A stretch of DNA of 64,000 nucleotides from Macrostomum lignano (lineage: Eukaryota): assembly GCA_002269645.1 (NCBI GenBank), contig NIVC01003096.1:55663-119662 (forward strand), given 5' to 3'. Positions 3,001 through 60,100 of this stretch are shown here, in pieces (position 1 is the first letter of the stretch; each line of letters opens with the position of its first letter). The position numbers and the translations under genes are program-made. The notes under the pieces are model-generated. The model was given only the letters and a program-made list of their open reading frames with translations. It was not told the DNA's origin and made no database searches.

Positions 3001-6000
3001 TAGATTGGATTGAGGGGATAAATTTGCCTTTCTCAGTGTAGGTTTGTAAGTACTCATTTGATTAGATTGGATTGAGGGGATAAATTTGCCTTTCTCAGTG
3101 TAGGTTTGTAAGTACTCATTTGATTAGATTGGATTGAGGGGATAAATTTGCCTTTCTCAGTGTAGGTTTGTAAGTACTCATTTGATTAGATTGGATTGAG
3201 GGGATAAATTTTCCTTTCTCAGTGTAGGTTTGTAAGTACTCATTTGATTAGATTGGATTGAGGGGATAAATTTTCCTTTCTCAGTGTAGGTTTGTAAGTA
3301 CTCATTTGATTAGATTGGATTGAGGGGATAAATTTTCCTTTCTCAGTGTAGGTTTGTAAGTACTCATTTGATTAGATTGGATTGAGGGGATAAATTTGCC
3401 TTTCTCAGTGTAGGTTTGTAAGTACTCATTTGATTAGATTGGATTGAGGGGATAAATTTGCCTTTCTCAGTGTAGGTTTGTAAGTACTCATTTGATTAGA
3501 TTGGATTGAGGGGATAAATTTGCCTTTCTCAGTGTAGGTTTGTAAGTACTCATTTGATTAGATTGGATTGAGGGGATAAATTTGCCTTTCTCAGTGTAGG
3601 TTTGTAAGTACTCATTTGATTAGATTGGATTGAGGGGATAAATTTTCCTTTCTCAGTGTAGGTTTGTAAGTACTCATTTGATTAGATTGGATTGAGGGGA
3701 TAAATTTGCCTTTCTCAGTGTAGGTTTGTAAGTACTCATTTGATTAGATTGGATTGAGGGGATAAATTTGCCTTTCTCAGTGTAGGTTTGTAAGTACTCA
3801 TTTGATTAGATTGGATTGAGGGGATAAATTTGCCTTTCTCAGTGTAGGTTTGTAAGTACTCATTTGATTAGATTGGATTGAGGGGATAAATTTGCCTTTC
3901 TCAGTGTAGGTTTGTAAGTACTCATTTGATTAGATTGGATTGAGGGGATAAATTTGCCTTTCTCAGTGTAGGTTTGTAAGTACTCATTTGATTAGATTGG
4001 ATTGAGGGGATAAATTTGCCTTTCTCAGTGTAGGTTTGTAAGTACTCATTTGATTAGATTGGATTGAGGGGATAAATTTGCCTTTCTCAGTGTAGGTTTG
4101 TAAGTACTCATTTGATTAGATTGGATTGAGGGGATAAATTTGCCTTTCTCAGTGTAGGTTTGTAAGTACTCATTTGATTAGATTGGATTGAGGGGATAAA
4201 TTTGCCTTTCTCAGTGTAGGTTTGTAAGTACTCATTTGATTAGATTGGATTGAGGGGATAAATTTGCCTTTCTCAGTGTAGGTTTGTAAGTACTCATTTG
4301 ATTAGATTGGATTGAGGGGATAAATTTGCCTTTCTCAGTGTAGGTTTGTAAGTACTCATTTGATTAGATTGGATTGAGGGGATAAATTTGCCTTTCTCAG
4401 TGTAGGTTTGTAAGTACTCATTTGATTAGATTGGATTGAGGGGATAAATTTGCCTTTCTCAGTGTAGGTTTGTAAGTACTCATTTGATTAGATTGGATTG
4501 AGGGGATAAATTTGCCTTTCTCAGTGTAGGTTTGTAAGTACTCATTTGATTAGATTGGATTGAGGGGATAAATTTGCCTTTCTCAGTGTAGGTTTGTAAG
4601 TACTCATTTGATTAGATTGGATTGAGGGGATAAATTTTCCTTTCTCAGTGTAGGTTTGTAAGTACTCATTTGATTAGATTGGATTGAGGGGATAAATTTT
4701 CCTTTCTCAGTGTAGGTTTGTAAGTACTCATTTGATTAGATTGGATTGAGGGGATAAATTTGCCTTTCTCAGTGTAGGTTTGTAAGTACTCATTTGATTA
4801 GATTGGATTGAGGGGATAAATTTGCCTTTCTCAGTGTAGGTTTGTAAGTACTCATTTGATTAGATTGGATTGAGGGGATAAATTTGCCTTTCTCAGTGTA
4901 GGTTTGTAAGTACTCATTTGATTAGATTGGATTGAGGGGATAAATTTGCCTTTCTCAGTGTAGGTTTGTAAGTACTCATTTGATTAGATTGGATTGAGGG
5001 GATAAATTTGCCTTTCTCAGTGTAGGTTTGTAAGTACTCATTTGATTAGATTGGATTGAGGGGATAAATTTGCCTTTCTCAGTGTAGGTTTGTAAGTACT
5101 CATTTGATTAGATTGGATTGAGGGGATAAATTTGCCTTTCTCAGTGTAGGTTTGTAAGTACTCATTTGATTAGATTGGATTGAGGGGATAAATTTTCCTT
5201 TCTCAGTGTAGGTTTGTAAGTACTCATTTGATTAGATTGGATTGAGGGGATAAATTTTCCTTTCTCAGTGTAGGTTTGTAAGTACTCATTTGATTAGATT
5301 GGATTGAGGGGATAAATTTGCCTTTCTCAGTGTAGGTTTGTAAGTACTCATTTGATTAGATTGGATTGAGGGGATAAATTTGCCTTTCTCAGTGTAGGTT
5401 TGTAAGTACTCATTTGATTAGATTGGATTGAGGGGATAAATTTGCCTTTCTCAGTGTAGGTTTGTAAGTACTCATTTGATTAGATTGGATTGAGGGGATA
5501 AATTTGCCTTTCTCAGTGTAGGTTTGTAAGTACTCATTTGATTAGATTGGATTGAGGGGATAAATTTGCCTTTCTCAGTGTAGGTTTGTAAGTACTCATT
5601 TGATTAGATTGGATTGAGGGGATAAATTTGCCTTTCTCAGTGTAGGTTTGTAAGTACTCATTTGATTAGATTGGATTGAGGGGATAAATTTTCCTTTCTC
5701 AGTGTAGGTTTGTAAGTACTCATTTGATTAGATTGGATTGAGGGGATAAATTTTCCTTTCTCAGTGTAGGTTTGTAAGTACTCATTTGATTAGATTGGAT
5801 TGAGGGGATAAATTTTCCTTTCTCAGTGTAGGTTTGTAAGTACTCATTTGATTAGATTGGATTGAGGGGATAAATTTTCCTTTCTCAGTGTAGGTTTGTA
5901 AGTACTCATTTGATTAGATTGGATTGAGGGGATAAATTTTCCTTTCTCAGTGTAGGTTTGTAAGTACTCATTTGATTAGATTGGATTGAGGGGATAAATT

Positions 6001-7790
6001 TGCCTTTCTCAGTGTAGGTTTGTAAGTACTCATTTGATTAGATTGGATTGAGGGGATAAATTTGCCTTTCTCAGTGTAGGTTTGTAAGTACTCATTTGAT
6101 TAGATTGGATTGAGGGGATAAATTTGCCTTTCTCAGTGTAGGTTTGTAAGTACTCATTTGATTAGATTGGATTGAGGGGATAAATTTGCCTTTCTCAGTG
6201 TAGGTTTGTAAGTACTCATTTGATTAGATTGGATTGAGGGGATAAATTTGCCTTTCTCAGTGTAGGTTTGTAAGTACTCATTTGATTAGATTGGATTGAG
6301 GGGATAAATTTGCCTTTCTCAGTGTAGGTTTGTAAGTACTCATTTGATTAGATTGGATTGAGGGGATAAATTTGCCTTTCTCAGTGTAGGTTTGTAAGTA
6401 CTCATTTGATTAGATTGGATTGAGGGGATAAATTTGCCTTTCTCAGTGTAGGTTTGTAAGTACTCATTTGATTAGATTGGATTGAGGGGATAAATTTGCC
6501 TTTCTCAGTGTAGGTTTGTAAGTACTCATTTGATTAGATTGGATTGAGGGGATAAATTTGCCTTTCTCAGTGTAGGTTTGTAAGTACTCATTTGATTAGA
6601 TTGGATTGAGGGGATAAATTTTCCTTTCTCAGTGTAGGTTTGTAAGTACTCATTTGATTAGATTGGATTGAGGGGATAAATTTTCCTTTCTCAGTGTAGG
6701 TTTGTAAGTACTCATTTGATTAGATTGGATTGAGGGGATAAATTTGCCTTTCTCAGTGTAGGTTTGTAAGTACTCATTTGATTAGATTGGATTGAGGGGA
6801 TAAATTTTCCTTTCTCAGTGTAGGTTTGTAAGTACTCATTTGATTAGATTGGATTGAGGGGATAAATTTGCCTTTCTCAGTGTAGGTTTGTAAGTACTCA
6901 TTTGATTAGATTGGATTGAGGGGATAAATTTGCCTTTCTCAGTGTAGGTTTGTAAGTACTCATTTGATTAGATTGGATTGAGGGGATAAATTTGCCTTTC
7001 TCAGTGTAGGTTTGTAAGTACTCATTTGATTAGATTGGATTGAGGGGATAAATTTTCCTTTCTCAGTGTAGGTTTGTAAGTACTCATTTGATTAGATTGG
7101 ATTGAGGGGATAAATTTTCCTTTCTCAGTGTAGGTTTGTAAGTACTCATTTGATTAGATTGGATTGAGGGGATAAATTTTCCTTTCTCAGTGTAGGTTTG
7201 TAAGTACTCATTTGATTAGATTGGATTGAGGGGATAAATTTTCCTTTCTCAGTGTAGGTTTGTAAGTACTCATTTGATTAGATTGGATTGAGGGGATAAA
7301 TTTTCCTTTCTCAGTGTAGGTTTGTAAGTACTCATTTGATTAGATTGGATTGAGGGGATAAATTTTCCTTTCTCAGTGTAGGTTTGTAAGTACTCATTTG
7401 ATTAGATTGGATTGAGGGGATAAATTTTCCTTTCTCAGTGTAGGTTTGTAAGTACTCATTTGATTAGATTGGATTGAGGGGATAAATTTTCCTTTCTCAG
7501 TGTAGGTTTGTAAGTACTCATTTGATTAGATTGGATTGAGGGGATAAATTTTCCTTTCTCAGTGTAGGTTTGTAAGTACTCATTTGATTAGATTGGATTG
7601 AGGGGATAAATTTTCCTTTCTCAGTGTAGGTTTGTAAGTACTCATTTGATTAGATTGGATTGAGGGGATAAATTTTCCTTTCTCAGTGTAGGTTTGTAAG
7701 TACTCATTTGATTAGATTGGATTGAGGGGATAAATTTGCCTTCTCAGTGTAGGTTTGTAAGTACTCATTTTAGGTTTTTGTAAGTACTCA
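1..7790. repeat. 62-bp satellite array, ~125 copies, runs off the left edge of the window
   Basis: Unit tgtaggtttgtaagtactcatttgattagattggattgaggggataaattt(g/t)cctttctcag. It is near-identical throughout apart from one G/T dimorphic site and rare 1-nt deletions, and decays at ~7740-7800. Confidence 0.98.
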
Positions 7791-8009: not shown

Positions 8010-12942
<4,933 letters not shown>

Positions 12943-14602: not shown

Positions 14603-14675
14603 TGGAGTACCAGGGCATCGATCCCTGTACCTCTCGCATGCTAAGCGAGCGCTCTACCATTTGAGCTAGTACCCC
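14603..14675 (-). tRNA. tRNA-Ala(AGC): tRNA-Ala (AGC)
   Basis: Reverse complement GGGGTACTAGCTCAAATGGTAGAGCGCTCGCTTAGCATGCGAGAGGTACAGGGATCGATGCCCTGGTACTCCA. It has a full 7-bp acceptor stem with the G3:U70 Ala identity pair, anticodon arm CTCGC-TTAGCAT-GCGAG, and the eukaryotic Ala-type ATCG T-loop. Confidence 0.95.
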
Positions 14676-15230
14676 TTATCTCTCGGCCGTGGCAGAGGTC
14701 ATATAAATACATTAAACAAGACCGAATTAAAGCCAGACGTCGCTTGTAAATCAATCAGAACGAATGTTTAGAACTTTTTATATTTTTGGATTGTATCTTC
14801 AGCTACTTTAATAGGTAATCAAGTTTCGACGTCTATGCAATCTACCATTGTTTAATATTGGCGTATAAATGCTTTATTACAGTAAACTCCTGGTCCTGGC
14901 TATCTCCTATCGATTCGTAGTGTTCAAACCTTAACATACTTATTCAGTGGTATTAAACTTTTAGAATGGTAAATTTAAAATAAAATTTTTTCAAGAAAAC
15001 TTTTAATTGAAGACGAAGTCGATGCAGTGGTAAAAATTAGAAAAATATGTTGCATACTGTCAGTAGGCATATTAGCACTTTTTGTCTAAATTAGTAAAAG
15101 GTAAACTGCAAATTTCTAAATTTGGCCATCCACTCGTTCATGCTGATTTCGCTCAGCATTTTACCAAATATGGAAATTGCTCACCGTTGCCGTTATCCAT
15201 AAATGGAAAATCTCCCATTGTCCAGCTGCG

Positions 15231-16650
15231 ATGCGGAATACAAAAGTAGAATACATCTTCAACTCTGGGAGATCGCAGAACTCCCATCATCGATTGCTCG
15301 CCATCATGCAGTTCGCCAAGCGATACCCGTTCGAGGTGTCTTTCAAAGTGGCCAAGCTGCAGGGCGATGCGGTCAGCCGCAACCTGAGCCCCGACTCGGC
15401 GGCCGAGTGCCACCTGCGGCTGCGCCCCGGCCCGCCACCGCAGTCGGGGCACTGCGAGATCTACCTGGTTTGCAAGTGCGGAGAACGCAGCAGCTTCGCC
15501 TACGTGGAGGCGCACCTGGCCCAGTCGGCAGCGCAGGTGGCCGACTCTGACGGCGGCCTCCTGCTGGGCGGTCTCGTGCAGAGATTCGACTCCGGGACCA
15601 CGGAGCGGCTACTGGGCCGGATCGCCCTGCCCACCATCGGCCGCAACGCCCGCTACCTGGCCGCCAACCTGCGCCTCACGGGCCACCTGCTGGTGGAGGA
15701 CGGCTGCGGTCCGGATGCCTTCGCGCCAGACGAAATCAGCGACGTCCGGCTGCTGGTGGAGGGCCGGGAGCTGCACCTGCACCGCGGCCTGCTCGCCAAG
15801 ACATCGCCAGTGTTCCGCGCCATGCTGCTCGGCTGCTTTCGCGAGGGCCAGCAGCAGCAGGAGGCGATCGAGCTGCCGGGTAAGAGCCTCAGCCAGTTCG
15901 TGGAGCTGCTGGCCACCGTCTACCCGCCCCAGCTGGAGATGCACAGCGGCAGGTGAGGGGACAGCATTTGCTTATTCTTTGTTCTACTATCAGTAGCTGC
16001 AGAGAGCAGTCAATCAAAAATTTACGACTCTAGAATTTATAGCAATAAACACGTGATTGAACAATCCAGAGCTCGACACCTGCTGCCGTTGCTGGCTGAG
16101 TACCAGATGGTTCACCTGCTGGACCGCTGCGAGCGGGCGTTGCTGCAGTCGCCGGTGTACACTCTGCCCGACGGCTGCGGCTTTCGGGACCTCTCTGGAG
16201 AAGACGCGGCAGACATCGGGGTGAGTGACCGAATCTCCTATCTCCACTCCCATTATGCATGTACTTGCTGGCTCTCATCCTGAAAAGTACATCTTAAATG
16301 TACTTTAAATTTGAGTACCATTGATCTCGGCTTCCCGCTCTACTCAGCTGAGACTTCCATCTCCGCCATTAATGCAGCCGAATCTGCCTGAAGCGTGGAT
16401 GGAGGAGCTGCTGGAGCATGCCTGCTTGGCCACGGTGTACCAGCTGCGGGAGCTGCAGGACCAGGCGGTGTCGCTGCTGGCCAGCATCCAGCTGACCGCC
16501 GCCAGCCAGTCAACGCTGAAGGAACATCTGCCAGACGAGATTCTCTGCCGGATCTTCGCCCGCCGGGTGAGCTTGCTGGAGGGCAAGATCGGCCGGCTAA
16601 GCGAGGAGCTGGAGCGGTACCGCAGCCAGCTGGCGGAGTCCGAGGGCTGA
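15231..16650 (+). CDS. BTB/POZ domain protein with a probable divergent MATH-like N-terminus (SPOP-like architecture), 3 exons
   Basis: Exons ~15231-15952, ~16043-16220 and 16378 (or 16348)-16650. BTB motif SDVRLLVEGRELHLHRGLLAKTSPVFRAMLLGCFREG...FVELLATVYP...LLPLLAEYQMVHLLDRCE, with a C-terminal short coiled coil. The start codon and the exon 2 and 3 acceptors are uncertain, and the MATH call rests on pattern only. Confidence 0.8.
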
Positions 16651-32364: not shown

Positions 32365-33276
32365 TCAGAGCAGCGCCGCAGTGTCGCTGAAGGCCGGCGG
32401 CCGGTGATGCTGCAGCAGGTGCTGCTGGACACGGCGCAGCTCGTCCCGGTACAGGTCCCGCTCGCGGTTGGCGCGGTCCAGCTGCAGGCGGAGGCTGGCG
32501 ATCTGGCGGGCCATGCCGACACTCTCGGTGGCCAGCTCGGCCTGGGTCTTCTGCCGGCGCAGGCGGCACACGTGCGCGTACTGCCGGTTCTTCAGCGTCC
32601 GCCTGCGGTGCTTGAGCTGCAGAACCCGTGACTTGGGCAGGTGGCGCAGGCGTAGGTTGAGGTCCTTGATGCTCAGCGACACCAGGTCGTAGTCGGAGAT
32701 ACCGGTGCCGGCCGAAGAGCCGCTTGGGCCGTCCGAGACGCTCAGCCCGTCGTCCTCGTCGTCGCCAGCCGCTCCGACCTCCTCCGACTCGTCCAGCGGC
32801 GACGGCGGCGGTGAAAACGCGAGCGGGAACTCGCAGTAGTGGGCCGGCGTAGACTGGCCGGTGTGGCAGCCGCTGTCCGGCGGGGAAAGGCTGTCCGACA
32901 GGTCCAGGATGTCCTTCAGGAAGTCCTCGTCCTCGCACTTCACCGCCACGCACACGTCCGAAGGGCTGACGCGACCGTCAGCAGAGGCGTCGCCGACCTG
33001 GGAGGCCGGCAGGCCGAAATCCTGGCTGCAGATGGCGGCCGGACCGAGCGAGTACAGAGGCAAGTCGATCTCCATCGCGGGCGAGGCAAAGCTGCTTGGC
33101 TGCTGGGTAAGAGCAGAGTGCTGGCAGGGTAAAATGTGTTGTCTGAGCTGGGCTTTGAGCTGTGCGCGCTCTGCTATGGAAGGCCCGCAAAGGGGAGGCG
33201 GCAGCTGCTGGGCCGGGCTGCTCAAATATTCAGAGCCGGTGAGGGGGACCGGAGCTCGCCCTGCTGCCGCAGCCAA
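32365..33276 (-). CDS. MAF: Maf-family bZIP transcription factor (large-Maf-like architecture), apparently single exon
   Basis: Extended homology region SDYDLVSLSIKDLNLRLRHLPKSRVLQLKHRRRTLKNRQYAHVCR, followed by a zipper and preceded by an acidic/Ser-Pro region. The start could be 33276 or the later MEIDLP methionine. Confidence 0.88.
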   Translation of the reverse strand: MAAAAGRAPVPLTGSEYLSSPAQQLPPPLCGPSIAERAQLKAQLRQHILPCQHSALTQQPSSFASPAMEIDLPLYSLGPAAICSQDFGLPASQVGDASADGRVSPSDVCVAVKCEDEDFLKDILDLSDSLSPPDSGCHTGQSTPAHYCEFPLAFSPPPSPLDESEEVGAAGDDEDDGLSVSDGPSGSSAGTGISDYDLVSLSIKDLNLRLRHLPKSRVLQLKHRRRTLKNRQYAHVCRLRRQKTQAELATESVGMARQIASLRLQLDRANRERDLYRDELRRVQQHLLQHHRPPAFSDTAALL

Positions 33277-36139: not shown

Positions 36140-38803
36140 TTAATGCTGAGGCATCCTGGGCTGCTGCTGCTGCATCACAATAGATGGGTCCACAGCTGGG
36201 AAATAGTTCAGGTACTGCTGCTGCTGAGGCTGCTGCCGAGGATCGCCCTGCATCTGCTCGATTGGCATCAGGCGCTTCGCCTGGCCGTCTCCCGACATCC
36301 ATTCCGGCATTCGCTGCTGCTGCTGAGGCGGTGGGCCGCCGCCACCGCGGCGCTGCTGCGAGTTGAAGCCGCCGCCACCACCGCGCCCGCGACCATAGAA
36401 CACCATGCCGCTGAAGCCCCCGCCGCCCCTGCCGCCAGGGCCTCCGCCTCCATCGCCGCCGCCGCCGCTGCCCGTCTGCTGGCGCGAGTTTCGAGACGCG
36501 TTCGCCCGCTCCCGCTGCTGCCGGTCGAACTTCTCTAGGTCGAGCTCGTACATGCGGGGCTGCTGCTGCTGGTCCAGCTGCTGCTGCGGCGGCCTTTGAT
36601 GCTGCCGTTGCTGTGGAAACCGCTGCTGCTGCGGGCGCGGATCCGCCGGTTCCTGGCGTTGGCGTCGGCCACCGTCCGACCTCTGGTTCCCACGCTGGTT
36701 CGAGCGCAGTCGCGGGTCCTGGGCGTCCCGGCCAAAGGATTCGGCCTGGCCCGCCTGCTGCTGCGGCGGTGGCTGCCTCGGCCGGCCGAAGCCTCTGCGA
36801 CCGCCGCCACCTTCCCTAGGCATCAACTGGGCAGGAGGCGGCGGCGCTGCAACTGCCGCGCTTTCGACTGCATCGTCTGATGAGCCGGGGTTCCTCGGCT
36901 GGACGCCGCGCCCGCGTCCGCGCCCGCGACGCTGCCTGCCGCCGCGCGGGCCCCCGGCCTCGGCTGGGCGCTGAGGCTCTGCTGGCTCAGCAGCACCGTC
37001 AGCATGGCTAATGTTGAACCCGTAGCGCTTAACCAACTCGGCAGGGGTCTTCGGGCTCTGCAGGTACTGGTCGAATCGGTCGTGCCGCCACTTGTCCACC
37101 GCGTCCGGGCCGCGCTTGGCTTGCCGCGGCTGCTTAGAGGCCTCAGCCGTGTCTACGCTGCCCTCCTCGCGGAGGTCGTGCATGTAGAAATTGCCCCGTC
37201 TGGGCACGAAGGCCGGGTCCGACTCGTCCTCTTCTGGGCTTTTTGGCGCCTCCTCACTTGGACTGCCAGCCTCCGCTGCCTCTGCGTCATCCTCGTCGTG
37301 CTCCACTCCAGCCTCTGCTCCGTATTCCTCTATCACTCCAGCCTCCTCTTCCTCTTCAGATCCGGCTTCCTTATTTCTTTCGCCTTCTACGACTTCCTCT
37401 TTAGCCTCTTTGACTTCTCTGGTCCCTTCCGCTCCAATTTCATCCTCCTCTTCAGCTTCATCCTCTCCAACTTCTTCTTCCTCTTCTCCAGCTTCTTCAT
37501 CCTCCTCTCCAACTTCTTCCTCTTCTCCAGCTTCTTCATCCTCCTCTCCAACTTCTTCCTCTTCTCCAGCTTCTTCATCCTCCTCTCCAACTTCTTCCTC
37601 TTCTCCAGCTTCTTCATCCTCCTCTCCAACTTCTTCCTCTTCTCCAGCTTCTTCATCCTCCTCTCCAACTTCTTCCTCTTCTCCAGCTTCATCCTCCTCT
37701 CCAACTTCTTCCTCTTCTCCAGCTTCTTCAACGTCTTCTACAGCTTCACCTTCCTCTCCAGCTTCGTCAACTCCAATTCCACCTTTATCTTCTTTTTCAG
37801 CGTCTTCACCCATCTCTCCGATATCCGTTTTATTTCCTTCTTGAGCTTCGTCGCCTTCAACTACAGCAACGTCTTTGTTTTCTTTCAACTCAATTTCCGC
37901 CGTTTCCGCTTTAACTTCTCCCTCTGCAGCCACAGCTTCATCACGCGACTCAGATTCGTCCATATTTGCACCAGCTTCCACATTCGGCTGCTCTTGGGAG
38001 TCGCGGCCCCCAGCTGCCTGCTCATCATCAACAGCGTCCGAGTAGACAGAGGACGAGCCCTCGCCCTCGACAATTTCGCCGCGTTCCGCAGTCACCTCTG
38101 CAGTCTCGGTCTGAGGCTTGTCAGCCGCAGATGCCTCATCGTCCTTCATCTCGGCCTGCTCATTCTGCTGCTCACCGCCAGCTGCAGCCGCAGATGCCTC
38201 ATCGTCCTTCATCTCGGCCTGCTCATTCTGCTGCTCACCGCCAGCTGCAGCCGCACTGCCCGTGCCAGCATGGGTTTCGGCATGATCAGTCTCCACCTGC
38301 TCGTCGGCAGCTGGAGCAACTCTAGCTTCATCAGTTTGAGCCCGCTCCTCTCCAGCTTCAGTTTGTTCAACTTGACCTGCTGTCACAGCCTGCTCTGCAG
38401 CCTCCACAGCTTCAACGACCTGATTATTCGAACTGGCAGGCTGCTCCACTTTCGGAGCCTCTGCGGACTCATCAGCAGACTCTGCCGCCTCATCACTGTC
38501 AGCTGCCTTCGCCTCAACAGCAGTCAGCCCAGCCTCCGAGCTCTCCTGCACTGGAGATGACGGATTTGGCTCTCCGCTCTCGCCCTCAGCCTGCGGCGCC
38601 GGCTCCTCAGCGGCTTCGACAAACTGCGCCGACTCGGAGCCGCCCGTGTCGCCGTCCTCGGAGACCGCGTCGCCAGCCTCGGTCTTCGGAGCCTCGGCAG
38701 CCGCGGTGCCGTCTTCGGCATCGGCAAATTCCGACTCTGTGGGATCGTCCTGCGCGTGCGAGTCCTGCAATTGAATTTGGCTGGGCTTGGATTCGATCCT
38801 CAT
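36140..38803 (-). CDS. CASC3: CASC3/Barentsz/MLN51 (exon junction complex component), 887-aa ORF
   Basis: SELOR/Btz domain DESDPAFVPRRGNFYMHDLR...DKWRHDRFDQYLQSPKTPAELVKRYGFNI, with a very long acidic N-terminus and an RG/Q/P-rich C-terminus. The true 5' end is uncertain. Confidence 0.9.
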   Translation of the reverse strand: MRIESKPSQIQLQDSHAQDDPTESEFADAEDGTAAAEAPKTEAGDAVSEDGDTGGSESAQFVEAAEEPAPQAEGESGEPNPSSPVQESSEAGLTAVEAKAADSDEAAESADESAEAPKVEQPASSNNQVVEAVEAAEQAVTAGQVEQTEAGEERAQTDEARVAPAADEQVETDHAETHAGTGSAAAAGGEQQNEQAEMKDDEASAAAAGGEQQNEQAEMKDDEASAADKPQTETAEVTAERGEIVEGEGSSSVYSDAVDDEQAAGGRDSQEQPNVEAGANMDESESRDEAVAAEGEVKAETAEIELKENKDVAVVEGDEAQEGNKTDIGEMGEDAEKEDKGGIGVDEAGEEGEAVEDVEEAGEEEEVGEEDEAGEEEEVGEEDEEAGEEEEVGEEDEEAGEEEEVGEEDEEAGEEEEVGEEDEEAGEEEEVGEEDEEAGEEEEEVGEDEAEEEDEIGAEGTREVKEAKEEVVEGERNKEAGSEEEEEAGVIEEYGAEAGVEHDEDDAEAAEAGSPSEEAPKSPEEDESDPAFVPRRGNFYMHDLREEGSVDTAEASKQPRQAKRGPDAVDKWRHDRFDQYLQSPKTPAELVKRYGFNISHADGAAEPAEPQRPAEAGGPRGGRQRRGRGRGRGVQPRNPGSSDDAVESAAVAAPPPPAQLMPREGGGGRRGFGRPRQPPPQQQAGQAESFGRDAQDPRLRSNQRGNQRSDGGRRQRQEPADPRPQQQRFPQQRQHQRPPQQQLDQQQQPRMYELDLEKFDRQQRERANASRNSRQQTGSGGGGDGGGGPGGRGGGGFSGMVFYGRGRGGGGGFNSQQRRGGGGPPPQQQQRMPEWMSGDGQAKRLMPIEQMQGDPRQQPQQQQYLNYFPAVDPSIVMQQQQPRMPQH

Positions 38804-45957: not shown

Positions 45958-46522
45958 CAAAAAGTAGATTCTGCCCTCCAGTCTGTCCTGCTTCAGTGCC
46001 CTGAAACATCCATTTTGGTGCCCTGTCCTGACTGAGCATCCATGATTGCAAGGTGCATTTTTTGCTCTTCGTCCCTTCCTTCCCTTCCTTTCCTTTCCTT
46101 CCCTTCCTTTCCTTTCCTTCCCTTCCTTCCTCATGTCCCGCCCTTCGTCACAGACAAAAATAGCACAGCATTTTTAAAGTCACTGGTAGGATGGCAAATG
46201 GTTTGAGACAGGGTGAGGTAACAGGCCCCAACTGCAACCCTGTAAGACAGCTGAATGCAATAAATTTGCAGCTCTATTTTCTGCGATGAGGTTTAGCAAG
46301 TGCCGTGCCAACATAAATGAATAAATGACCTTCAGAGAATGCATCGTAACTGAAAATTGGTCCTGTTTGTTTTTGTCAAAAATGGGCTGCAAGAAGTGGC
46401 TGGAGTTCTCTATAAAATGAGTCCATGGAGCAGCCTTAAAAAGACACTATGGTCTTGAGAAGGCTATGGGGCTGCAGGGCGAGCTATCTAACTGATTTCT
46501 AACTCTCAACTGCTACATCAGC

Positions 46523-49500
46523 ATGGCCAGACTCTTGCTGCTGCTCATTACAGCCGCTGTCTGCACAGGTAAATTGGCATTCTGCTCGAATAGCAATTAG
46601 CAAATGCACTTCATGCAGCTCAGGTGACCATTCTCGCATTGCAGACGGCGGCCTCGCCATCAGCTGCTTCAGCCGCAGCGGAAGCACAGACGAAAGCAAC
46701 CGGACTGCGATTTCCTGTGGAGACTTCCCCTACTGCTATTCGTATTCGAAAGGCCTCGAGGTAAGGTCAAATGAGAAATGTCACAGAGTGGCTTGTTTGG
46801 CTTTGACTTCACTTTTGATTTACCGTATCTGCCGTCGTTTTATTCAAGTACGCGTGCACTCATAAGGACAGCTAAAGCAGAAGGGGTCGGTTGTGGTTTT
46901 ATTCAAGTACGCGTGCACTCATAAGGACAGCTAAAGCAGAAGGGGTCGGTTGTGGTTTTATTCAAGTACGCGTGCACTCATAAGGTCAGCTAAAGCAGAA
47001 GGGGTCGGTTGTGGTTTTATTCAAGTACGCGTGCACTCATAAGGTCAGCTAAAGCAGAAGGGGTCGGTTGTGGTTTTATTCAAGTACGCGCGCACTCATA
47101 AGGACAGCTAAAGCAGAAGGGGTCGGATGTGGTTTTATTCAAGTACGCGCGCACTCATAAGGACAGCTAAAGCAGAAGGGGTCGGATGTGGTTTTATTCA
47201 AGTACGCGCGCACTCATAAGGACAGCTAAAGCAGAAGGGGTCGGATGTGGTTTTATTCAAGTACGCGCGCACTCATAAGGACAGCTAAAGCAGAAGGGGT
47301 CGGATGTGGTTTTATTCAAGTACGCGCGCACTCATAAGGACAGCTAAAGCAGAAGGGGTCGGATGTGGTTTTATTCAAGTACGCGCGCACTCATAAGGAC
47401 AGCTAAAGCAGAAGGGGTCGGATGTGGTTTTATTCAAGTACGCGCGCACTCATAAGGACAGCTAAAGCAGAAGGGGTCGGATGTGGTTTTATTCAAGTAC
47501 GCGCGCACTCATAAGGACAGCTAAAGCAGAAGGGGTCGGATGTGGTTTTATTCAAGTACGCGCGGAAGCACTGAGGCACTGAAGCACGGGCTGGCAGTGC
47601 AGCAGCGCTGTGGCCCGAGTGTCAATGGGCGTGGCTGCACGAACCAGACGTGGTCAAGTTGCATTGTTGGTCAGTCCGCGCATCAGTGCCGTATAGCAAT
47701 GCACTGGTGATTGCTGATTGGCGCACAGAGGAAGTTATGAAAACACAGTTAGCCCGTGTTCTTGAATTTTGCATGCCTTCGTTGCTCCATTTCGGGGCGG
47801 CAAAAATCGTCAGGGGTTCCCTCCCTCCTTGGCTGCTCTGCTGTACAGTGGAATTCGCACAGCAGTGCGAAAAGCAGCCAGAAATTGTTTCCATGGTTAA
47901 CAACTTCCGATCAGTCTGTGCAGAGTTTTTATTGCAAAAAATTTATGGGCTTTGATGCGAAATGAGCACACGAAAGACTGGCAAGCCACAGCTGTGAAGA
48001 AAGTGGATAAAGGATATTGGTAAATTGAGTTGAGTTGAGTTGGTGATGCTGTGAAGTCATCTTTCTTAGTCTTTGGTTCTGAGAGTTTACAGGCTTTAGA
48101 AATTGAAAGAAATTGAATTTGAAAGAAATAGATTATGAAGCAGGCGGCAAATCTTCTAGCAAGATTGAAATTTTCAAGTTTCTCACCGAACTGAGCTCTG
48201 CTTGTCGCGTTCGACACTTTTTGATTTGCACTTCGCGAAATTCGATTCCTGTCTGTTTCACCTCTGCTTCGTAAAGTTTTCTTAGCAACTTGTGAAATAC
48301 CATCAGAGCTGTCTATTTTAATAATTTTACGCGCTTTCAGCGTTTTGCCGGCTGCAGCAGCTGCACCGGGCTCCAAGAGTACTATTCTGGTGGATGCAGC
48401 AACACCATCTGCACGTTGGGAATGGACTGTCAAGTGTGCAGCTCTGACTTCTGCAATACGGTCTCTCCCTCAAGCATCAGCTGTTTCTACCGCAGTGGCG
48501 TGCACTACAGTGCAAATGACAATGGAACGAAGGTCACATGTCATTCTGGGTGGCCACCTGTTACTCGTACATGTCGGTAAGCTGCATCAGCACAGACGCA
48601 CCTCAGCAGCACATCGACTTGCTTTCAGCTTAGATCTTTCACACCATTTTCATTCACCCTCAACTCCCAGGGATCGTCCAGCTACGCTGGCTGCGGTGAC
48701 TGCCGCACACGGGACGATCCCTCGTGCGTCACATGCAACTCTGCGTACTGCAACACAATGGCCTCATCGGCCATCAGCTGCTACGCTGGCTCCACTGGGC
48801 TACCCGGTGGACCCGGTGGATCACTGAGCAATGGAACTGCGGTTGCATGCCCAACAGGAGTCACGTCGTGCTTCTCCTATCGCCGTCTTGGAACTTCTTC
48901 TTCTACGAGTATCAGTGTGAGATGCTCTTAAGAAAATTTGCTACATATGCTCGTAATTTTCAATTAAGGTACCAATCGAAGCCATCTCCCCGATAGTGCA
49001 GACAGTACAATGGCTGGCAAGGACTAGTTTAGTGCTGCTTGCAGAATCAGTGATCGCATTTTCAGGTATCGAGCACACATCCTGTCAATACAATGGCTAT
49101 CTCAGTATGCTATGAGATAGTATGCCATCTCAACAGTAGCATAGTAGCACTTTAGTTCGCCCTGGTGAATGAATTGGATCGACCTGGGGCCAGGGGCAGA
49201 ACTTTTCTGTATTAACCCTTTGCCCTTGCTGGTCTCAGAGACTGAAGGAACTTCAGAGGCTGCCATCATACGTCATAGCGGGTGCTCCGTCATTTCCCAC
49301 TCTAGCGAAGTGAGGGCTCTGGCATGGTGATCGGGAGGGCTTGAGCAAGCACAGAGCTGCCTACAGCTAATTGGTGATCGGGAGGGCTTGAGCAAGCACA
49401 GAGCTGCCTACAGCTAATTGGTGATCGGGAGGGCTTGAGCAAGCACAGAGCTGCCTACAGCTAATTGGTGATCGGGAGGGCTTGAGCAAGCACAGAGCTG

Positions 49501-52500
49501 CCTACAGCTAATTGGTGATCGGGAGGGCTTGAGCAAGCACAGAGCTGCCTACAGCTAATTGGTGATCGGGAGGGCTTGAGCAAGCACAGAGCTGCCTACA
49601 GCTAATTGGTGATCGGGAGGGCTTGAGCAAGCACAGAGCTGCCTACAGCTAATTGGTGATCGGGAGGGCTTGAGCAAGCACAGAGCTGCCTACAGCTAAT
49701 TGGTGATCGGGAGGGCTTGAGCAAGCACAGAGCTGCCTACAGCTAATTGGTGATCGGGAGGGCTTGAGCAAGCACAGAGCTGCCTACAGCTAATTGGTGA
49801 TCAGGAGGGCTTGAGCAAGCAGAGGTCTATAGCCAAAGCTGGGACTCAGCTTAGTGCGTCTATAGGGAATCTGCAACCCCAACCAGAAGACTTCAGAGGA
49901 TCCTTAATCGCTATGATCAGCGCACGTAGCAGTACTTGAAGAAGTACTTGGAGCATGTACTGTATGCATGATTTTCAGATGCTCAGTGCAAGAAGGGTTG
50001 CGCATTCGGGGGTTGCTCTGCTTGCAGACTTCGCAATTCTTCGCAACTCAAGAAGCTGCCAGGCGTCCTCATCCGAATTGCATTTTGCCTGCGTGCTGCT
50101 CCCTCAGATGCCGTCAAGTGGGCAGCCATGGGTTTCCGTAAATACAAAACTAACTCTGAAGTCCAATGTTCCGAAATTTTGCAGTTCACTTCTGGCTGCG
50201 GTGCCTGCAACTCCACTGGTCAACCGGCATGTGCGACCTGCAGCACCGACCTGTGCAACACGGTCACGCCTTCAGCCATCAGCTGCAATATTCAAACACA
50301 TTATGACTCGGTCGTTATGTTTAGCCACGGAAACGCGGTGGCCTGTCCGTCTGGAATGACTTCCTGCTACTCAACCATGGCTTCGGTATGAGCTGTCTGG
50401 GTTGGAGTTTGCTTTGCTCTTTTATATTCCGCATAGACATAAAAACGCTAAGAAGTTCATTGCACTTGGACACCACAGAATACATACAACGCATTATACG
50501 ATTACGGCTGCGGAAGCTGCAGCGCAGACGCCATGCCATCCTGTGTGAACTGCGCCACCGACAACTGCAACACGGCTGACAGGAGTGGCCACACCTGCTA
50601 CAGCCTCTTGTCTAATCATGGCTATACGCGTGCCATTACTGTGGCTTGCACCGGAGGAATTAAAAGCTGCTACACTCTGACCAAGCCGATCGTAAGTTAT
50701 TGATAATTCTGCAGCTGGCCAGATATCATTGTGAAGGCTTAGCTCGTTTAGCCTTTCATGGCGAGTTGGGGGCTTTTTACAGACCATTGTCAGGCTGAAT
50801 TATAAATATTGACTATGCGACCCCATCCTATTCGGGGCAGACAGCGAAATCCCAGTTATGGAAATCCCAGTTATGGAAATCCCAGTTCCAGTCAGTTAAA
50901 TTTTCTGTCAATAAAGACATTTTCCTGTCAGAATTAGGCTCGCATTAAACCACAGAAATTCAATACACAGGGAAAACTCTAATCTCCCTGTCAGAATCAT
51001 TCCCCATCAGCATCTTTTCCTATCAGCATCATTCCTATGAGCATCATTCCCCATCAGCATCATTCCCTATCAGCATCATTCCCTATCAGCATCATTCCCC
51101 ATCAGCATCATTCCCTATCAGCATCATTCCCTGTCAGCATCATTCCCCTCAGATGATCAACAAAAAGGGGTCAGAATCAAGTGCTCATTGAATTGAGCAA
51201 GCTTTGATCACAAGCCAGCAGCGGTCATGTGAGCTGGCCTTTACCCACTTCGCGTCCTTTCAGACATTTTCCAATAATCAATTCGAGACACCCGTGAGCG
51301 GCTGCGGCGTCTGCACCCCCACATCAACTGCTCTCTACGGCTGCATCTCCTGCAACACCAGCAACTGCAACGCACCTGCCAACAGTGGCGGCAGCAGCCT
51401 GCCAGCCACCCTCAGCACGCCGCCATCAAACGCACCTGCCAGTAGCAGCAGCAGCCTGCCAGCCACCCTCAGCACGCCGCCGCCAGGTCAATCGAACCCA
51501 ACAGCGAATCCTGCGATCACCGCGTCGGGCATCGGCTGCTACCAGAGCTTCAGCAAAAATAAGAAAACAGAACAGCAGAAAACCAGCTGCCCATCCTACA
51601 GCAGCTGCTTTGACTACACCTTCAAATCCGGCTCGGACAGGGTGAGTCCTGCGGCATTTGGTGTGCTGGTGGGCCCACACGTCAGAACCCAATGCAGTTC
51701 CACCCACCAGTGCCACACTGCACCCTGCCACACTGCAACCCCAATCCTGCCACACTGCACCCCTGCCACACTGCAACCCCAATCCTGCCACACTGCACCC
51801 CCACCCCTGCCACACTGCAACCCCAATCCTGCCACACTGCATCCCCACCCCTGCCACACTGCACCCCCACCCCTGCCACACTGCAACCCCAATCCTGCCA
51901 CACTGCATCCCCACCCCTGCCACACTGCACCCCCACCCCTGCCACACTGCAACCCCAATCCTGCCACACTGCACCCCTGCCACACTGCACCCCCACCCCT
52001 GCCACACTGCACCCCTGCCACACTGCACCCCCACCCCTGCCACACTGCAACCCCACCCCTGCCACACTGCACCCCCACCCCTGCCACACTGCAACCCCAA
52101 TCCTGCCACACTGCACCCCCACCCCTGCCACACTGCATCCCCACCCCTGCCACACTGCATCCCCACCCCTGCCACACTGCACCCCCACCCCTGCCACACT
52201 GCACCCCACCCCTGCCACACTGCACCCCCACCCCTGCCACTGCAGTTTTACATCTCCGGCTGCGGCAGCTGCCCGTTCAGCGGAGGCAGCGACGGCTCCA
52301 CCTGCCGCACCTGCCACTCGAACTACTGCAACTCGGCTCAGAGCCGCATCACCTGCTACTCCAGCTTCGGCGGCAGTCGGAAGGATAAAAAGGAGCTGGA
52401 CTGTCCTTCATCCACCAGCTGCTTTCACTACAGCTACTCCTATAATTTCGGCATGACTGAGGTGAGCTCGCACTCGAAAACTCTTCATAGAGAGTGGCAA

Positions 52501-52706
52501 AAAAATCACAAAGCCTCTATTTTCCCCTGCTTCATCAGTTCTTCTTTGCCGGCTGCGGAAACTGCTCGTTCAGCAGCGACACCACGACCTGCCGCACCTG
52601 CTTCACCGACCTCTGCAACTCCGGAAGCCGGCTGGGAAGCCGCGCCTTCACCGCCGCTGCCGCCGCCGCTGTCGTTTTCTGCGTGATGCTGCTGAGCTAC
52701 CGCTGA
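46523..52706 (+). CDS. Secreted, probably GPI-anchored protein with seven tandem Ly6/uPAR (three-finger)-like Cys domains; ~606 aa, 9 exons, one apparent frameshift in exon 3
   Basis: Exons 46523-46568 (signal peptide MARLLLLLITAAVCT), 46645-46760, 48341-48576, 48671-48916, 50185-50385, 50479-50691, 51264-51641, 52246-52461 and 52539-52706. Repeats follow xCY..C..SC(F/Y)|..GCxxC..CxxCxxxxCN. The last domain is followed by CNSGS and a hydrophobic tail. One G appears to be missing at 48548-48551 (TCT GG[G] GTG GCC ACC TGT TAC). Confidence 0.85.
46835..47565. repeat. 59-bp minisatellite, ~12 copies, in intron 2 of the Cys-rich gene
   Basis: Unit gtggttttattcaagtacgcgcgcactcataaggacagctaaagcagaaggggtcggat. 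Confidence 0.95.
49326..49822. repeat. 47-bp minisatellite, ~10.5 copies
   Basis: Unit ggtgatcgggagggcttgagcaagcacagagctgcctacagctaatt. Confidence 0.95.
51710..52244. repeat. C-rich ~22-bp minisatellite running up to the exon 8 acceptor
   Basis: Unit cactgcacccccacccctgcca; the last copy ends cactgcag|. Confidence 0.93.
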
Positions 52707-52888
52707 CAGCTGCTGAGCTACCGCTGACAGCTGGCTGAGCTACCGCTGACAGCTGCTGAGCTACCGCTGACAGCTGCTGAGCTACCGCTGACAGCTGCTG
52801 AGCTACCGCTGACAGCTGCTGAGCTACCGCTGACAGCTGGCTGAGCTACCGCTGACAGCTGCTGAGCTACCGCTGACAGCTGCTGAGC
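52690..52888. repeat. 21/22-bp minisatellite containing the stop codon of the Cys-rich gene, ~9 copies
   Basis: Unit gctgagctaccgctgacagct. Confidence 0.93.
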
Positions 52889-53175
52889 TGAGAAGCTATA
52901 CAGTTATACCTAGATGACTCTGTAACTATAAGTGTTTTTATAACTATTATAACTATTTTTTAATATCGACTACAGAATGTTTAGTGCCACATGCGTGAAA
53001 AAAATTGAATTTTAGTATCCTAGTAAATTCCGCCGTGAACTGCTTTGCACCTGTATTTGCTCAACTCGTTTATTTCTCGTATAGTTTTATGTAATTGTGG
53101 TTTATATATAGTTTTAATTTCACGAACAATTTATAAAATGAGTTTTCCTTTTTGATATTGAAAACATAATTGATC

Positions 53176-57136: not shown

Positions 57137-60100
57137 TCAGCAGTACTTGAACAGGCAGCACTCGTGCACCGGCTCCACCAGCCAGCGCTCCAGTTCCCTG
57201 TCGAACTTCATGTGGTAGCCTGTAATGCCTGCGGGGGGAGTTGTGAGCTCACTGACTCCCTGTGCACAGCTTATTGACTCACCTGTGCACAGCTCACTGA
57301 CTCACCTGTGCACAGCTCACTGACTCACCTGTGCACAGCTCACTGACTCACCTGTGCACAGCTTATTGACTCACCTGTGCACAGCTCACTGACTCACCTG
57401 TGCACAGCTCACTGACTCACCTGTGCACAGCTTATTGACTCACCTGTGCACAGCTCACTGACTCACCTGTGCACAGCTTATTGACTCACCTGTGCACAGC
57501 TCACTGACTCACCTGCGCACACCTCACTGACTCACCTGTGCACAGCTCACTGACTCCCCTGTGCACAGCTCACTGACTCACCTGTGCACAGCTCACTGAC
57601 TCACCTGTGCACAGCTTATTGACTCACCTGTGCACAGCTCACTGACTCACCTGTGCACAGCTTATTGACTCACCTGTGCACAGCTCACTGACTCACCTGT
57701 GCACAGCTCACTGACTCACCTGTGCACAGCTCACTGACTCACCTGTGCACAGCTTATTGACTCACCTGTGCACAGCTCACTGACTCACCTGTGCACAGCT
57801 CACTGACTCACCTGTGCACAGCTCACTGACTCACCTGTGCACAGCTTATTGACTCACCTGTGCACAGCTCACTGACTCACCTGTGCACACCTCACTGACT
57901 CACCTGTGCACAGCTCACTGACTCCCTGTGCACAGCTTATTGACTCACCTGTGCACAGCTCACTGACTCACCTGTGCACAGCTTATTGACTCACCTGTGC
58001 ACAGCTCACTGACTCACCTGTGCACAGCTTATTGACTCACCTGTGCACAGCTCACTGACTCACCTGTGCACAGCTTATTGACTCACCTGTGCACAGCTCA
58101 CTGACTCCCTGTGCACAGCTTATTGACTCACCTGTGCACAGCTTATTGACTCACCTGTGCACAGCTCACTGACTCACCTGCGCACACCTCACTGACTCAC
58201 CTGTGCACAGCTCACTGACTCACCTGTGCACAGCTCACTGACTCACCTGTGCACAGCTCACTGACTCACCTGTGCACAGCTCACTGACTCACCTGCGCAC
58301 ACCTCACTGACTCACCTGTGCACAGCTCACTGACTCACCTGTGCACAGCTCACTGACTCACCTGTGCACAGCTCACTGACTCACCTGTGCACAGCTCACT
58401 GACTCCCTGTGCACAGCTTATTGACTCACCTGTGCACAGCTCACTGACTCACCTGTGCACAGCTCACTGACTCACCTGTGCACAGCTCACTGACTCACCT
58501 GTGCACAGCTTATTGACTCACCTGTGCACAGCTCACTGACTCACCTGTGCACAGCTCACTGACTCACCTGTGCACAGCTCACTGACTCACCTGTGCACAG
58601 CTCATAGTCAGAGCAGCAGCCGAAGGCGTCAGCCGTGAAGGGCAGGCAGGACACCGCAAAGTCGATGGGGATGCAGCGCAGGTCCACCACCGGCTCGATG
58701 ACCTGGCAGGAGAACAGGTAGGCCAGCCAGCCGTGCAGCACGTGACCGGAGCAGCAGTTGGCGCTCTCGTCAGTCAGCATGCTCTTCCAGAAGCGCCTCA
58801 CCAGGCTGTGCCTGCCGCGGTGCTCGAATGTGCTGATCAGCATCTCCAGGATCTTCTGGACGCCTTCCATCCAGGGCGTCTCGATGCCGTAGTCCTCGGA
58901 GCTGGTCCTGAGGTAGGCGCACACTTCCTGGAAGCTCTGCAGCAGGTGCTGCCAGTCCTCCATCTTGCCCAGCATCCGCACACCGTAGATGCCGCACATG
59001 AACTCCTGCTCTCGGAATGCGGCTGACGGGGCGGGGAAGCAACGGCTTGAAAATTCGCTCTGGTGGGCCTCAGCCAGCAGTTTTAGTCCCGCCTGATAGC
59101 GCAACAGCTCACAGCTTGCACTCCACCAGAGCACTCCTGCAGCTCACACCGAGCACTCTCCCATGCCGCAGGCAGCACACACCGAGCACTCTCCCATGCC
59201 ACAGGCAGCACACACCGAGCACTCTCCAATGCCGCAGGCAGCACACACCGAGCACTCTCCCATGCCGCAGGCAGCACACGCCGAGCACTCTCCCATGCCG
59301 CAGGCAGCATACACCGAGCACTCTCCATGCCGCAGGCAGCACACACGAGCACTCTCCCATGCCACAGGCAGCACACGCCGAGCACTCTCCCATGCCGCAG
59401 GCAGCACACACCGAGCACTCTCCCATGCCGCAGGCAGCACACGCCGAGCACTCTCCCATGCCACAGGCAGCACACATTGAGCACTCTCCCATACCGCAGG
59501 CAGCACACGCCGAGCACTCTCCCATGCCGCAGGCAGCACACGCCGAGCACTCTCCCATGCCGCAGGCAGCACACGCCGAGCACTCTCCCATGCCGCAGGC
59601 AGCACACACCGAGCACTCTCCCATGCCGCAGGCAGCACACGCAGACCACTCACAGTCCGGCACGAATCGGTACTTGAAGGCGCAAACGGCCGAGTTGAGG
59701 TTGCCCAAGTCGGAGGCCTCGGTGGAGCTGGAGAAGCTCCGCTGCAGCAGCGTGGCCAGCTCAGTCTTGTGCGCGGTGCCGCGGTACACAGCCGCCTCGA
59801 TCTCCCGCAGCCAGACGCCCACGGTCGGCTTGGCCACGCAGGCGGAGATGCTCACCTGCTGCAGGCTGCTCATTACGCTGATGTCATCCCGGCGGACCCG
59901 GTGCTCCAGGTGCACCTGCTGGCTGATGCACTGGGCGATGCAGTTCCACCAGTCCTGAGGCGCCATGGACGCGATGCCGTGCAGCCGGTAGGCCATCAGC
60001 AGGCTGCCGGGGAAGCCCAGCAGGTCGATGACGTACTTCTGGCCAGAGTCTGAGTCGTTCTGCATCACCCAGTGCTCAGGCGACACCACCAGCTTCCTCT

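Follow-up and report, generated by a model that had tools for sequence, protein, structure and literature searches.

A divergent seven-domain three-finger gene of Macrostomum lignano with an intron inside every domain, a layout probably owed to inheritance and tandem duplication

The gene considered here belongs to the flatworm Macrostomum lignano and lies on the + strand at 46523-52706 of a 64-kb stretch of contig NIVC01003096.1 (64,000 nucleotides, nt; hereafter the window). It encodes seven tandem domains of the three-finger type (Ly6/uPAR-like, LU), each of them interrupted by an intron, and its internal exons straddle the domain borders. In our judgment this is a divergent multi-LU surface gene whose layout is probably explained by an inherited intron in the finger-2 loop together with tandem duplication. 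The established parts of this account are the exon map, the fold, the family-wide occurrence of the layout, and the change of domain number in the genome. A striking intron-in-every-domain pattern can thus arise without special function, and the gene would then be an ordinary member of the large LU family.

The presence of a seven-domain gene at this position can be read from the gene model, which was drawn from three-frame translation and splice-site inspection of 46400-52800. There are nine exons, all introns are GT-AG, the start ATG is at 46523, and the stop codon occupies 52704-52706. The features, in order, are as follows.

46411..46417, + strand: TATAAAA motif, a possible core promoter 106 nt 5' of the ATG, read from the sequence
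46523-46568, + strand: exon 1, 46 nt; signal peptide MARLLLLLITAAVCT; followed by a 76-nt phase-1 intron
46645-46760, + strand: exon 2, 116 nt; N-terminal half (N-half) of domain 1 with 3 Cys, ending CYSYSKGLE at a phase-0 donor
48341-48576, + strand: exon 3, 236 nt; C-terminal half (C-half) of domain 1 with 7 Cys, and N-half of domain 2
48671-48916, + strand: exon 4, 246 nt; C-half of domain 2 and N-half of domain 3; phases 0-0
50185-50385, + strand: exon 5, 201 nt; C-half of domain 3 and N-half of domain 4; phases 0-0
50479-50691, + strand: exon 6, 213 nt; C-half of domain 4 and N-half of domain 5; phases 0-0
51264-51641, + strand: exon 7, 378 nt; C-half of domain 5, Ser/Thr/Pro-rich linker, and N-half of domain 6; phases 0-0
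52246-52461, + strand: exon 8, 216 nt; C-half of domain 6 and N-half of domain 7; phases 0-0
52539-52706, + strand: exon 9, 168 nt; C-half of domain 7, glycosylphosphatidylinositol (GPI)-type signal, and stop

Intron 1 is phase 1 and, in the local reading frames, the remaining seven are all phase 0; each of these falls between the strand that follows the third cysteine (SC[FY]...) and the GCxxC motif. Inter-domain introns are lacking altogether, and the lengths of exons 4-8 (246, 201, 213, 378, and 216 nt) are divisible by 3. An initial annotation of this DNA had described both the run of phase-0 introns after the signal exon (7/7) and internal exons that each join the C-half of domain n to the N-half of domain n+1, and the map agrees with it on both counts. 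Its further statement that the introns occupy an equivalent position in every domain needs qualification: distances to the flanking cysteines vary within the gene (5-15 residues past Cys3 and 4-13 ahead of Cys4), so the equivalence holds for the finger-2 loop but not residue by residue.

Exon 3 departs from this regularity. At 236 nt, it causes the assembled open reading frame (ORF) to shift and to meet a stop in exon 4, a break that the initial annotation overlooked. The position of the shift can be narrowed to a short homopolymer by comparison with two further copies of the gene on another scaffold (loci L001 and L005 of NIVC01000020.1).

48548..48550, + strand: frameshift site, a G run that is one base short against exon 3 of L001 and L005 in the alignment

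The paralogous exon 3 at L001 has 237 nt. Two protein models from M. lignano also bear on the break: P0002 (UniRef A0A1I8I4U7, a truncated model of 478 amino acids, aa) is 100% identical to the window protein, and its cluster mate P0044 (A0A1I8I8H6, 600 aa) is the same seven-domain protein with exon 3 intact. Both are intact at the frameshift site, where they read ...HSGVATCYSYMS; both models have frameshift-like breaks of their own elsewhere, which implies that indel errors are common in these assemblies. In our reading, a homopolymer indel, either allelic or introduced in assembly, accounts for the frameshift, which would not be the general state of the gene. It is also conceivable that the 1-nt deletion is real and that the window copy is a pseudogene or null allele, truncated in domain 2-3, with the duplicated locus supplying the protein; the 236-nt exon 3 with its consequent stop in exon 4 would be expected in that case, and M. 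lignano has extra copies (including a tandem pair at the duplicated locus), making the loss of one tolerable. This reading appears unlikely, however, given that the gap sits in a G homopolymer, where long-read indel errors are typical, that two proteins from another assembly, 100% identical elsewhere, are intact at the gap site, and that the window copy has no further stops, has all its splice sites intact, and keeps every cysteine.

The conceptual protein of 606 aa begins with a signal peptide; seven Cys-rich domains follow, with a Ser/Thr/Pro linker among them, and a GPI-like tail ends the chain. Ten cysteines lie in domain 1 and eight in each of domains 2-7 (58 within domains, 60 in total), and the domain end CxxC-x4-CN recurs in 7/7 domains; on these counts the initial annotation was correct throughout. 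The domains share the signature of a divergent subfamily, C...C...C[FY]...GCGxC...CxxC-x4-CN, for which the disulfides predicted by homology with 8-Cys three-finger proteins are C1-C3, C2-C4, C5-C6, and C7-C8; of these, C2-C4 would bridge the two halves of the domain. The linker between domains 5 and 6 is Ser/Thr/Pro-rich, contains two ~20-aa repeats, and resembles a mucin-like stalk, and the conceptual protein has six N-glycosylation sequons. At the C-terminus, the small residues NSGS are followed by a spacer (RLGSRAFT), a hydrophobic segment (AAAAAAVVFCVMLLSY), and then R, with no cytoplasmic domain by hydropathy. Judged by eye and by hydropathy, the tail as a whole (NSGS-RLGSRAFT-AAAAAAVVFCVMLLSYR) resembles a GPI signal, and the product is probably GPI-anchored.

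Signal peptide, seven LU domains, sequons, mucin-like stalk, and GPI-type tail together argue for a surface glycoprotein. It would be extended and lipid-anchored, with variable finger loops that may bind partners in adhesion, recognition, matrix interaction, or ligand capture. A literature search by gene identifier found no paper, and for Ly6 in M. lignano it found incidental mentions only.

Because Pfam scores stay below threshold, membership of these domains in the LU superfamily rests on a profile-to-PDB search and on the fold. The whole protein has no Pfam match at all. Taken singly, domains 3 and 4 score 14.9 and 18.5 bits against Toxin_cobra-type (cut-off 25.3); the best Pfam score in the family is 22.7 bits to UPAR_LY6 (PF00021, cut-off 24.8), from the Mnemiopsis member described below, and the sub-threshold matches among 68 family domains are to Toxin_cobra-type, DUF753, Toxin_TOLIP, UPAR_LY6, and CD59, all of them in the Ly6/uPAR/toxin group of families. 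The UPAR_LY6 and DUF753 affinity considered in the initial annotation is visible in the identity of the matches but not in any score above the gathering threshold. An alignment of the 68 domains has eight invariant Cys columns and an N column, at 90% or more, and the adjacent CC doublet is missing from it, with CxxC-x(3-6)-CN in 68/68. Over its positions 1-64, the profile built from these domains matches PDB chains of the 8-Cys three-finger type end to end, at their residues 1-62 (E = 9e-5).

Modeling gives a concordant picture. The AlphaFold2 model of domain 4, made with the family alignment, has a predicted local distance difference test score (pLDDT) of 87.5 and a predicted template modeling score (pTM) of 0.75, with strands at residues 2-9, 19-22, 30-36, 41-47, and 59-61. 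Mapped onto this model, the intron separates residues 36 and 37 and so interrupts finger 2, the hairpin formed by strands C and D. Foldseek searches of the PDB with the domain 4 model returned only three-finger proteins as top matches, Lynx1 and SLURP-2 among them (template modeling [TM] score 0.72-0.80, root-mean-square deviation 2.1-2.4 Å across the entire domain, probability 1.00). The modeled domain fold is three-finger (Ly6/uPAR-like), and the initial description of a three-finger-like multi-domain protein with a signal peptide and a GPI-type tail finds support, for the fold from the profile-to-PDB search, AlphaFold, and Foldseek alike.

Database names suggest another identity. UniRef calls P0001, P0002, and P0044 'TNFR-Cys domain-containing protein' and P0005 and P0014 'Variant-specific surface protein' (VSP), as if the domains were TNFR-type Cys-rich repeats or CXXC repeats like those of Giardia VSPs and not LU units. 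We attach next to no probability to this: Pfam has no TNFR or VSP match at E values up to 1-10 (up to 10 for TNFR), both the profile-to-PDB search and Foldseek return full-length three-finger matches only, and the gene for P0005 repeats a two-exon set between phase-1 introns, which is the LU gene signature. A TNFR or VSP identity was rejected on the missing Pfam matches and the three-finger fold.

Relatives were gathered by an exhaustive HMMER domain-profile search of 1.84 billion representatives (E up to 1e-3), used instead of a word-indexed homolog search, which gave two proteins only and missed known paralogs. The profile search yielded 28 proteins; the traceable ones come from M. lignano, Meloidogyne hapla, and Mnemiopsis leidyi, and several of the 28 are metagenome or Logan-assembly proteins. 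What emerges is a divergent three-finger subfamily (GCGxC...CxxC-x4-CN) uncaptured by Pfam, whose members occur in one flatworm, one nematode, and one ctenophore and which in M. lignano has expanded to 2-12 domains per protein. Exons could be mapped exactly for five relatives.

P0006, M. lignano, 2 domains: phase-1 intron after the signal exon, then mid-domain phase-0 introns only
P0004, M. lignano, 4 domains: phase-1 intron after the signal exon, then mid-domain phase-0 introns only
P0005, M. lignano, 12 domains: 12 mid-domain phase-0 introns alternating with 11 inter-domain phase-1 introns
P0011, M. hapla: 9 introns mapped, every one mid-domain and phase 1; no inter-domain introns
P0042, Mnemiopsis, 1 domain: intronless

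The layouts of P0006 and P0004 agree exactly with that of the window gene, and the phase-0 mid-domain intron is shared by P0004, P0005, and P0006, a recurrence among paralogs for which the initial annotation had suggested a survey. P0011 likewise has exons that straddle domain borders, a C-half followed by the N-half of the domain after it, and all of them are symmetric. The gene for P0005 (locus L002, NIVC01001658.1) has 24 introns in 12 kb that alternate perfectly between phase 0 and phase 1; it is the textbook LU exon set repeated 12 times, with the inter-domain phase-1 introns kept.

These layouts can be read against the canonical LU gene, in which, after a signal exon, each domain takes two exons with the break at the loop-2 tip, and phase-1 introns flank the pair (PMC6600238). 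The window gene has the signal exon with its phase-1 intron and has each domain split in the finger-2 loop, whereas the phase-1 introns flanking each domain, present in P0005, are absent. The mid-domain intron is thus at the normal position for the LU superfamily, and it is in having no inter-domain introns that the window gene differs. Straddling exons occur in two phyla and in paralogs of differing domain number, which argues for an inherited layout and not for an adaptation of the seven-domain gene. Since the shared position was inherited by duplication, the introns do not represent seven independent events, and comparison with chance is meaningless. The expectation in the initial annotation that LU proteins usually have one domain and uPAR three was incomplete, as Drosophila proteins carry 2-44 LU domains (PMC6600238) and M. 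lignano has the 12-domain paralog.

Change in domain number can be followed at the duplicated locus on NIVC01000020.1. P0001 (BOX15_Mlig014447g1, 604 aa, locus L001) is an 85% identical M. lignano copy whose gene spans 15 kb and matches the window gene in its nine exons and in the positions and phases of its introns; the window and L001 loci are colinear through introns and minisatellites. A third copy (L005 6001-11046; models P0050 and P0003) lies ~13 kb upstream of P0001, and the signal-peptide exon with its phase-1 intron is present at both L001 and L005. The L005 copy has exons 1-7 and one last exon, six domains in all, and its linker is one repeat shorter. That last exon is a mosaic: the first ~70 nt correspond to exon 8 (C-half of domain 6) and the rest to exon 9 (the end of domain 7 and the tail). 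Sequence comparison indicates unequal crossing-over between homologous C-halves, which would have removed one unit and left a hybrid domain. Domain number in this family changes by genomic recombination, and the mosaic is direct evidence of an array shaped by tandem duplication and deletion. The fallback offered in the initial annotation, that the shared intron position records tandem duplication, is on the strength of the family-wide layout and the L005 recombinant the better-supported reading. The 219-aa model P0050 is truncated through read-through into intron 4.

Comparison of the window gene with P0001 over domains 1-5 finds 42/42 Cys conserved and 72/333 other positions changed (Fisher p = 1e-4). 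The ratio of nonsynonymous to synonymous rates (dN/dS) is 0.64 overall and 1.67 in exon 5, the latter value coming from few sites, and changes cluster in the finger-1 loops and in the finger-2 tips beside the intron. A fixed scaffold with fast-evolving binding loops is the usual three-finger picture. Exon 8 encodes a protein segment identical to that of the paralog, with zero synonymous changes, and exons 8-9 are identical or nearly so, synonymous sites included; together with their flanks (52246-52706 versus L001 24526-24983) they are 93-97% identical, against 75-87% further upstream and 75-81% in mid-gene. Such a pattern points to gene conversion between the two loci at their 3' ends.

The history we favor can be stated in a few steps. 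An ancestral LU intron in the finger-2 loop would have been present in every domain unit, and the gene would have grown by tandem duplication or unequal crossing-over of such units in a branch without inter-domain introns. A finger-2 intron, no inter-domain introns, and duplication would together produce exons that hold a C-half and the next N-half and are symmetric 0-0. Splicing of the window gene would normally be constitutive and give one seven-domain product.

Several points weigh against this account. Constitutive splicing of the window gene is an assumption, and the proposed surface-binding function is deduced solely from family and architecture. No Pfam family reaches its gathering score with the whole protein, with single domains, or with the 68 family domains, and the CxxC spacing departs from the canonical CC (CC-x4-CN). 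In the window gene the introns within domains are phase 0, versus phase 1 in the nematode relative P0011, and the internal intron of human uPAR would likewise be phase 1, to judge from single-exon deletions that stay in frame (PMC2724484) and flanking introns that are phase 1 (PMC6600238); with phases that differ, intron homology in the strict sense is at best putative and the equivalence applies at the level of the loop only. Half-domain identities (N6/N7 38%, C6/C7 61%, C5/C6 40%) fit whole-domain rather than exon duplication, and an extra step is then needed, since duplicating whole domains requires either that the breaks fell within exons or that introns between domains were subsequently lost. 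The exon as the unit of duplication was discarded, as the halves of domains 6 and 7 (38% N, 61% C) do not fit it. Finally, with its broken frame, the window allele could be non-functional.

The initial annotation saw in the same layout a built-in diversity generator, in which regulated exon skipping across the phase-0 mid-domain introns would yield up to 21 chimeric domains and hence a surface recognition repertoire from one gene. If this were true, it would be a rare case of protein diversity drawn from half-domains. Its arithmetic is correct: 21 combinations N(i)+C(j) with i<j are possible. The claim that skipping any run of internal exons stays in frame and keeps the Cys register stands only with exon 3 taken as 237 nt; internal exons are then all symmetric 0-0 and multiples of 3, and the predicted disulfide between the halves would be retained as well. 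Precedent comes from human uPAR, for which mRNAs without E3, E5, E6, E4+5, E5+6, or E3+4+5 have been cloned, all in frame, the E5+6 deletion yielding a chimera in which the domain II N-half meets the domain III C-half (PMC2724484). The fast evolution of the loops (dN/dS as given above, overall and for exon 5) would suit a recognition repertoire, and the natural six-domain copy with its hybrid domain implies that the genome at least tolerates hybrids.

Other observations speak against skipping, and we hold it to be very improbable. The protein collections searched hold no exon-skipped product of the window gene. P0018, an old gene model of a paralog, does join an N-half to a C-half three domains downstream at exact exon boundaries, but it also includes out-of-frame sequence from part of a further exon, and no contig is recorded for it; an annotation artefact is likely, and P0018 was set aside as an exon-skipped chimera of the 12-domain paralog. 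The layout itself is common to the two- and four-domain paralogs and to the nematode relative and is thus inherited, and in the two-domain paralog it could give one variant only. Splice donors are consensus-like (GTAAG, GTGAG, GTATG). A search for intron-intron complementarity or a selector-like element found none, the single 19-nt, 79% match across 6.2 kb being at chance level. With a mid-domain intron that is canonical for LU genes, a layout that is family-wide, and no selector-type complementarity, the reading of the layout as a built-in generator is conceivable but unsupported.

Structure prediction is of little help in deciding the matter. A chimera of the N-half of domain 4 and the C-half of domain 5 was modeled by AlphaFold as a three-finger fold (pLDDT 79.8, TM 0.62-0.74), so the fold is retained, though at lower confidence than native domain 4 (87.5) and with finger 2 poorly formed; the family alignment drives this model, which is accordingly neutral on foldability. 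The summed arms of finger 2 come to 12-20 residues in native domains and 9-28 in chimeras, leaving some chimeras without a native-like hairpin. The broader proposal that relatives in flatworms and nematodes likewise skip half-domain exons, as a combinatorial cell-surface recognition system of half-domains instead of whole ones, seems to us equally improbable. An inherited finger-2 intron multiplied by tandem duplication remains the preferred explanation.

The introns and 3' flank of the gene are rich in tandem repeats.

46837..47564: 59-bp minisatellite, 12.3 copies, in intron 2; also in the paralog intron
49325..49821: 47-bp minisatellite, 10.6 copies, in intron 4
51723..52240: 22/44/66-bp minisatellite, filling intron 7
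52688..52889: 21-bp minisatellite, starting in the last coding codons and running into the 3' flank

The array in intron 7 is open in three + frames, with the result that mechanical ORF lists read on from exon 7; retention of this intron would add a Pro/His/Cys/Thr-rich repeat and then put exon 8 out of frame. The first unit of the 21-bp minisatellite is made up of the final codons (LLSYR) together with the stop, and the tandem copy on the other scaffold has a different repeat after its stop. The 64-kb window contains 53 tandem-repeat arrays (score 200 or more). Minisatellites with units of 13-66 bp fill most of its intergenic and intronic DNA, and the intron arrays were therefore dismissed as a gene-specific feature: they are a genome-wide feature and not a property of the window gene. 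At window positions 1-7770 lies a 62-bp satellite (~125 copies, 99% identity, GC 35%, GC skew +0.45), which stops abruptly at ~7770, where composition changes to ~55% GC.

Other genes and domains were identified in the window from Pfam and Rfam matches.

9052-9600, + strand: protein kinase domain (Pfam)
14603-14675, - strand: tRNA gene (Rfam RF00005, 54 bits), the sole Rfam match in the window
15177-15956, + strand: BTB/POZ (Pfam)
32365-33276, - strand: bZIP_Maf (Pfam)
36140-38803, - strand: CASC3/Barentsz, an 887-aa single ORF (Pfam)
58556-59134, - strand: DUF4419 (Pfam)

The window and NIVC01000020.1 agree in gene order: Btz(-), LU gene, DUF4419(-). CASC3/Barentsz upstream (-) and DUF4419 downstream (-) are thus neighbours at both loci, and NIVC01000020.1 holds two tandem LU copies versus one in the window.

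Among known systems, the LU/three-finger superfamily (CD59, Lynx1, SLURPs, snake three-finger proteins) provides the broadest frame of comparison. The window protein shares with it the three-finger beta fold, an 8-Cys core ending in C-x4-CN, the signal exon with a phase-1 intron and the finger-2 intron (PMC6600238), a putative GPI-type C-terminus, and fast-evolving loops on a fixed Cys scaffold. It differs in having CxxC for CC, a conserved GCGxC motif, an internal intron of phase 0 and not 1, and seven domains per chain; it also lacks the loop-1 (2-3) disulfide, as in the 8-Cys toxin-type pattern. Human uPAR (PLAUR), C4.4A, Haldisin, CD177, and TEX101 are GPI-anchored LU chains whose exons are symmetric as well. 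Mammalian multi-LU genes, however, have a two-exon set per domain and inter-domain phase-1 introns (PMC6600238), of which the window gene has none of the latter. Mammalian N-terminal LU domains are without the 7-8 disulfide, whereas the window domains appear to keep 7-8 and to be without 2-3, and past the Cys scaffold there is no detectable sequence similarity between the window protein and mammalian multi-LU proteins.

Among invertebrates, Drosophila multi-LU/DUF753 proteins form tandem LU-type arrays as well, with 2-44 per protein (PMC6600238); six domains of the present family have weak matches to DUF753, all below threshold, and UniProt names P0018 'DUF753 domain-containing'. The flatworm LU proteins so far described are parasite surface proteins: the Ly6/CD59-like proteins of schistosomes and Fasciola (SmLy6/SmCD59 family) are three-finger proteins with a GPI anchor, and reports place them on the surface of the parasite (PMC3812095, PMC8763315). 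They are mostly single-domain, 10-Cys proteins with a CC doublet (PMC6600238 Figure 1), and this family is missing among the 28 representatives from the domain-profile search. Splicing generators of the Dscam1 type need many isoform transcripts and docking/selector RNA pairing, and between the introns of the window gene no such complementarity was found, nor do the databases searched contain isoform proteins.

Members of the subfamily can be compared as well. The Meloidogyne hapla proteins P0011, P0015, and P0020 have the same tandem C...C...C[FY]...GCGxC...CxxC-x4-CN domains and mid-domain introns only; they differ in the phase of those introns (phase 1), in coming from another phylum, and in being Lys/Asn-rich, and the P0011 model has no clear signal peptide or GPI tail. 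The M. lignano paralogs BOX15_Mlig019351 (P0005), Mlig007435 (P0004), and Mlig005402 and Mlig005947 (P0006 and P0010) share with the window gene the domain signature, the phase-0 intron, the signal exon with its phase-1 intron, and a hydrophobic C-terminal tail, and they differ from it in having 12 (P0005), 4 (P0004), or 2 (P0006, P0010) domains where the window gene has 7, with 20-45% identity between the cysteines.

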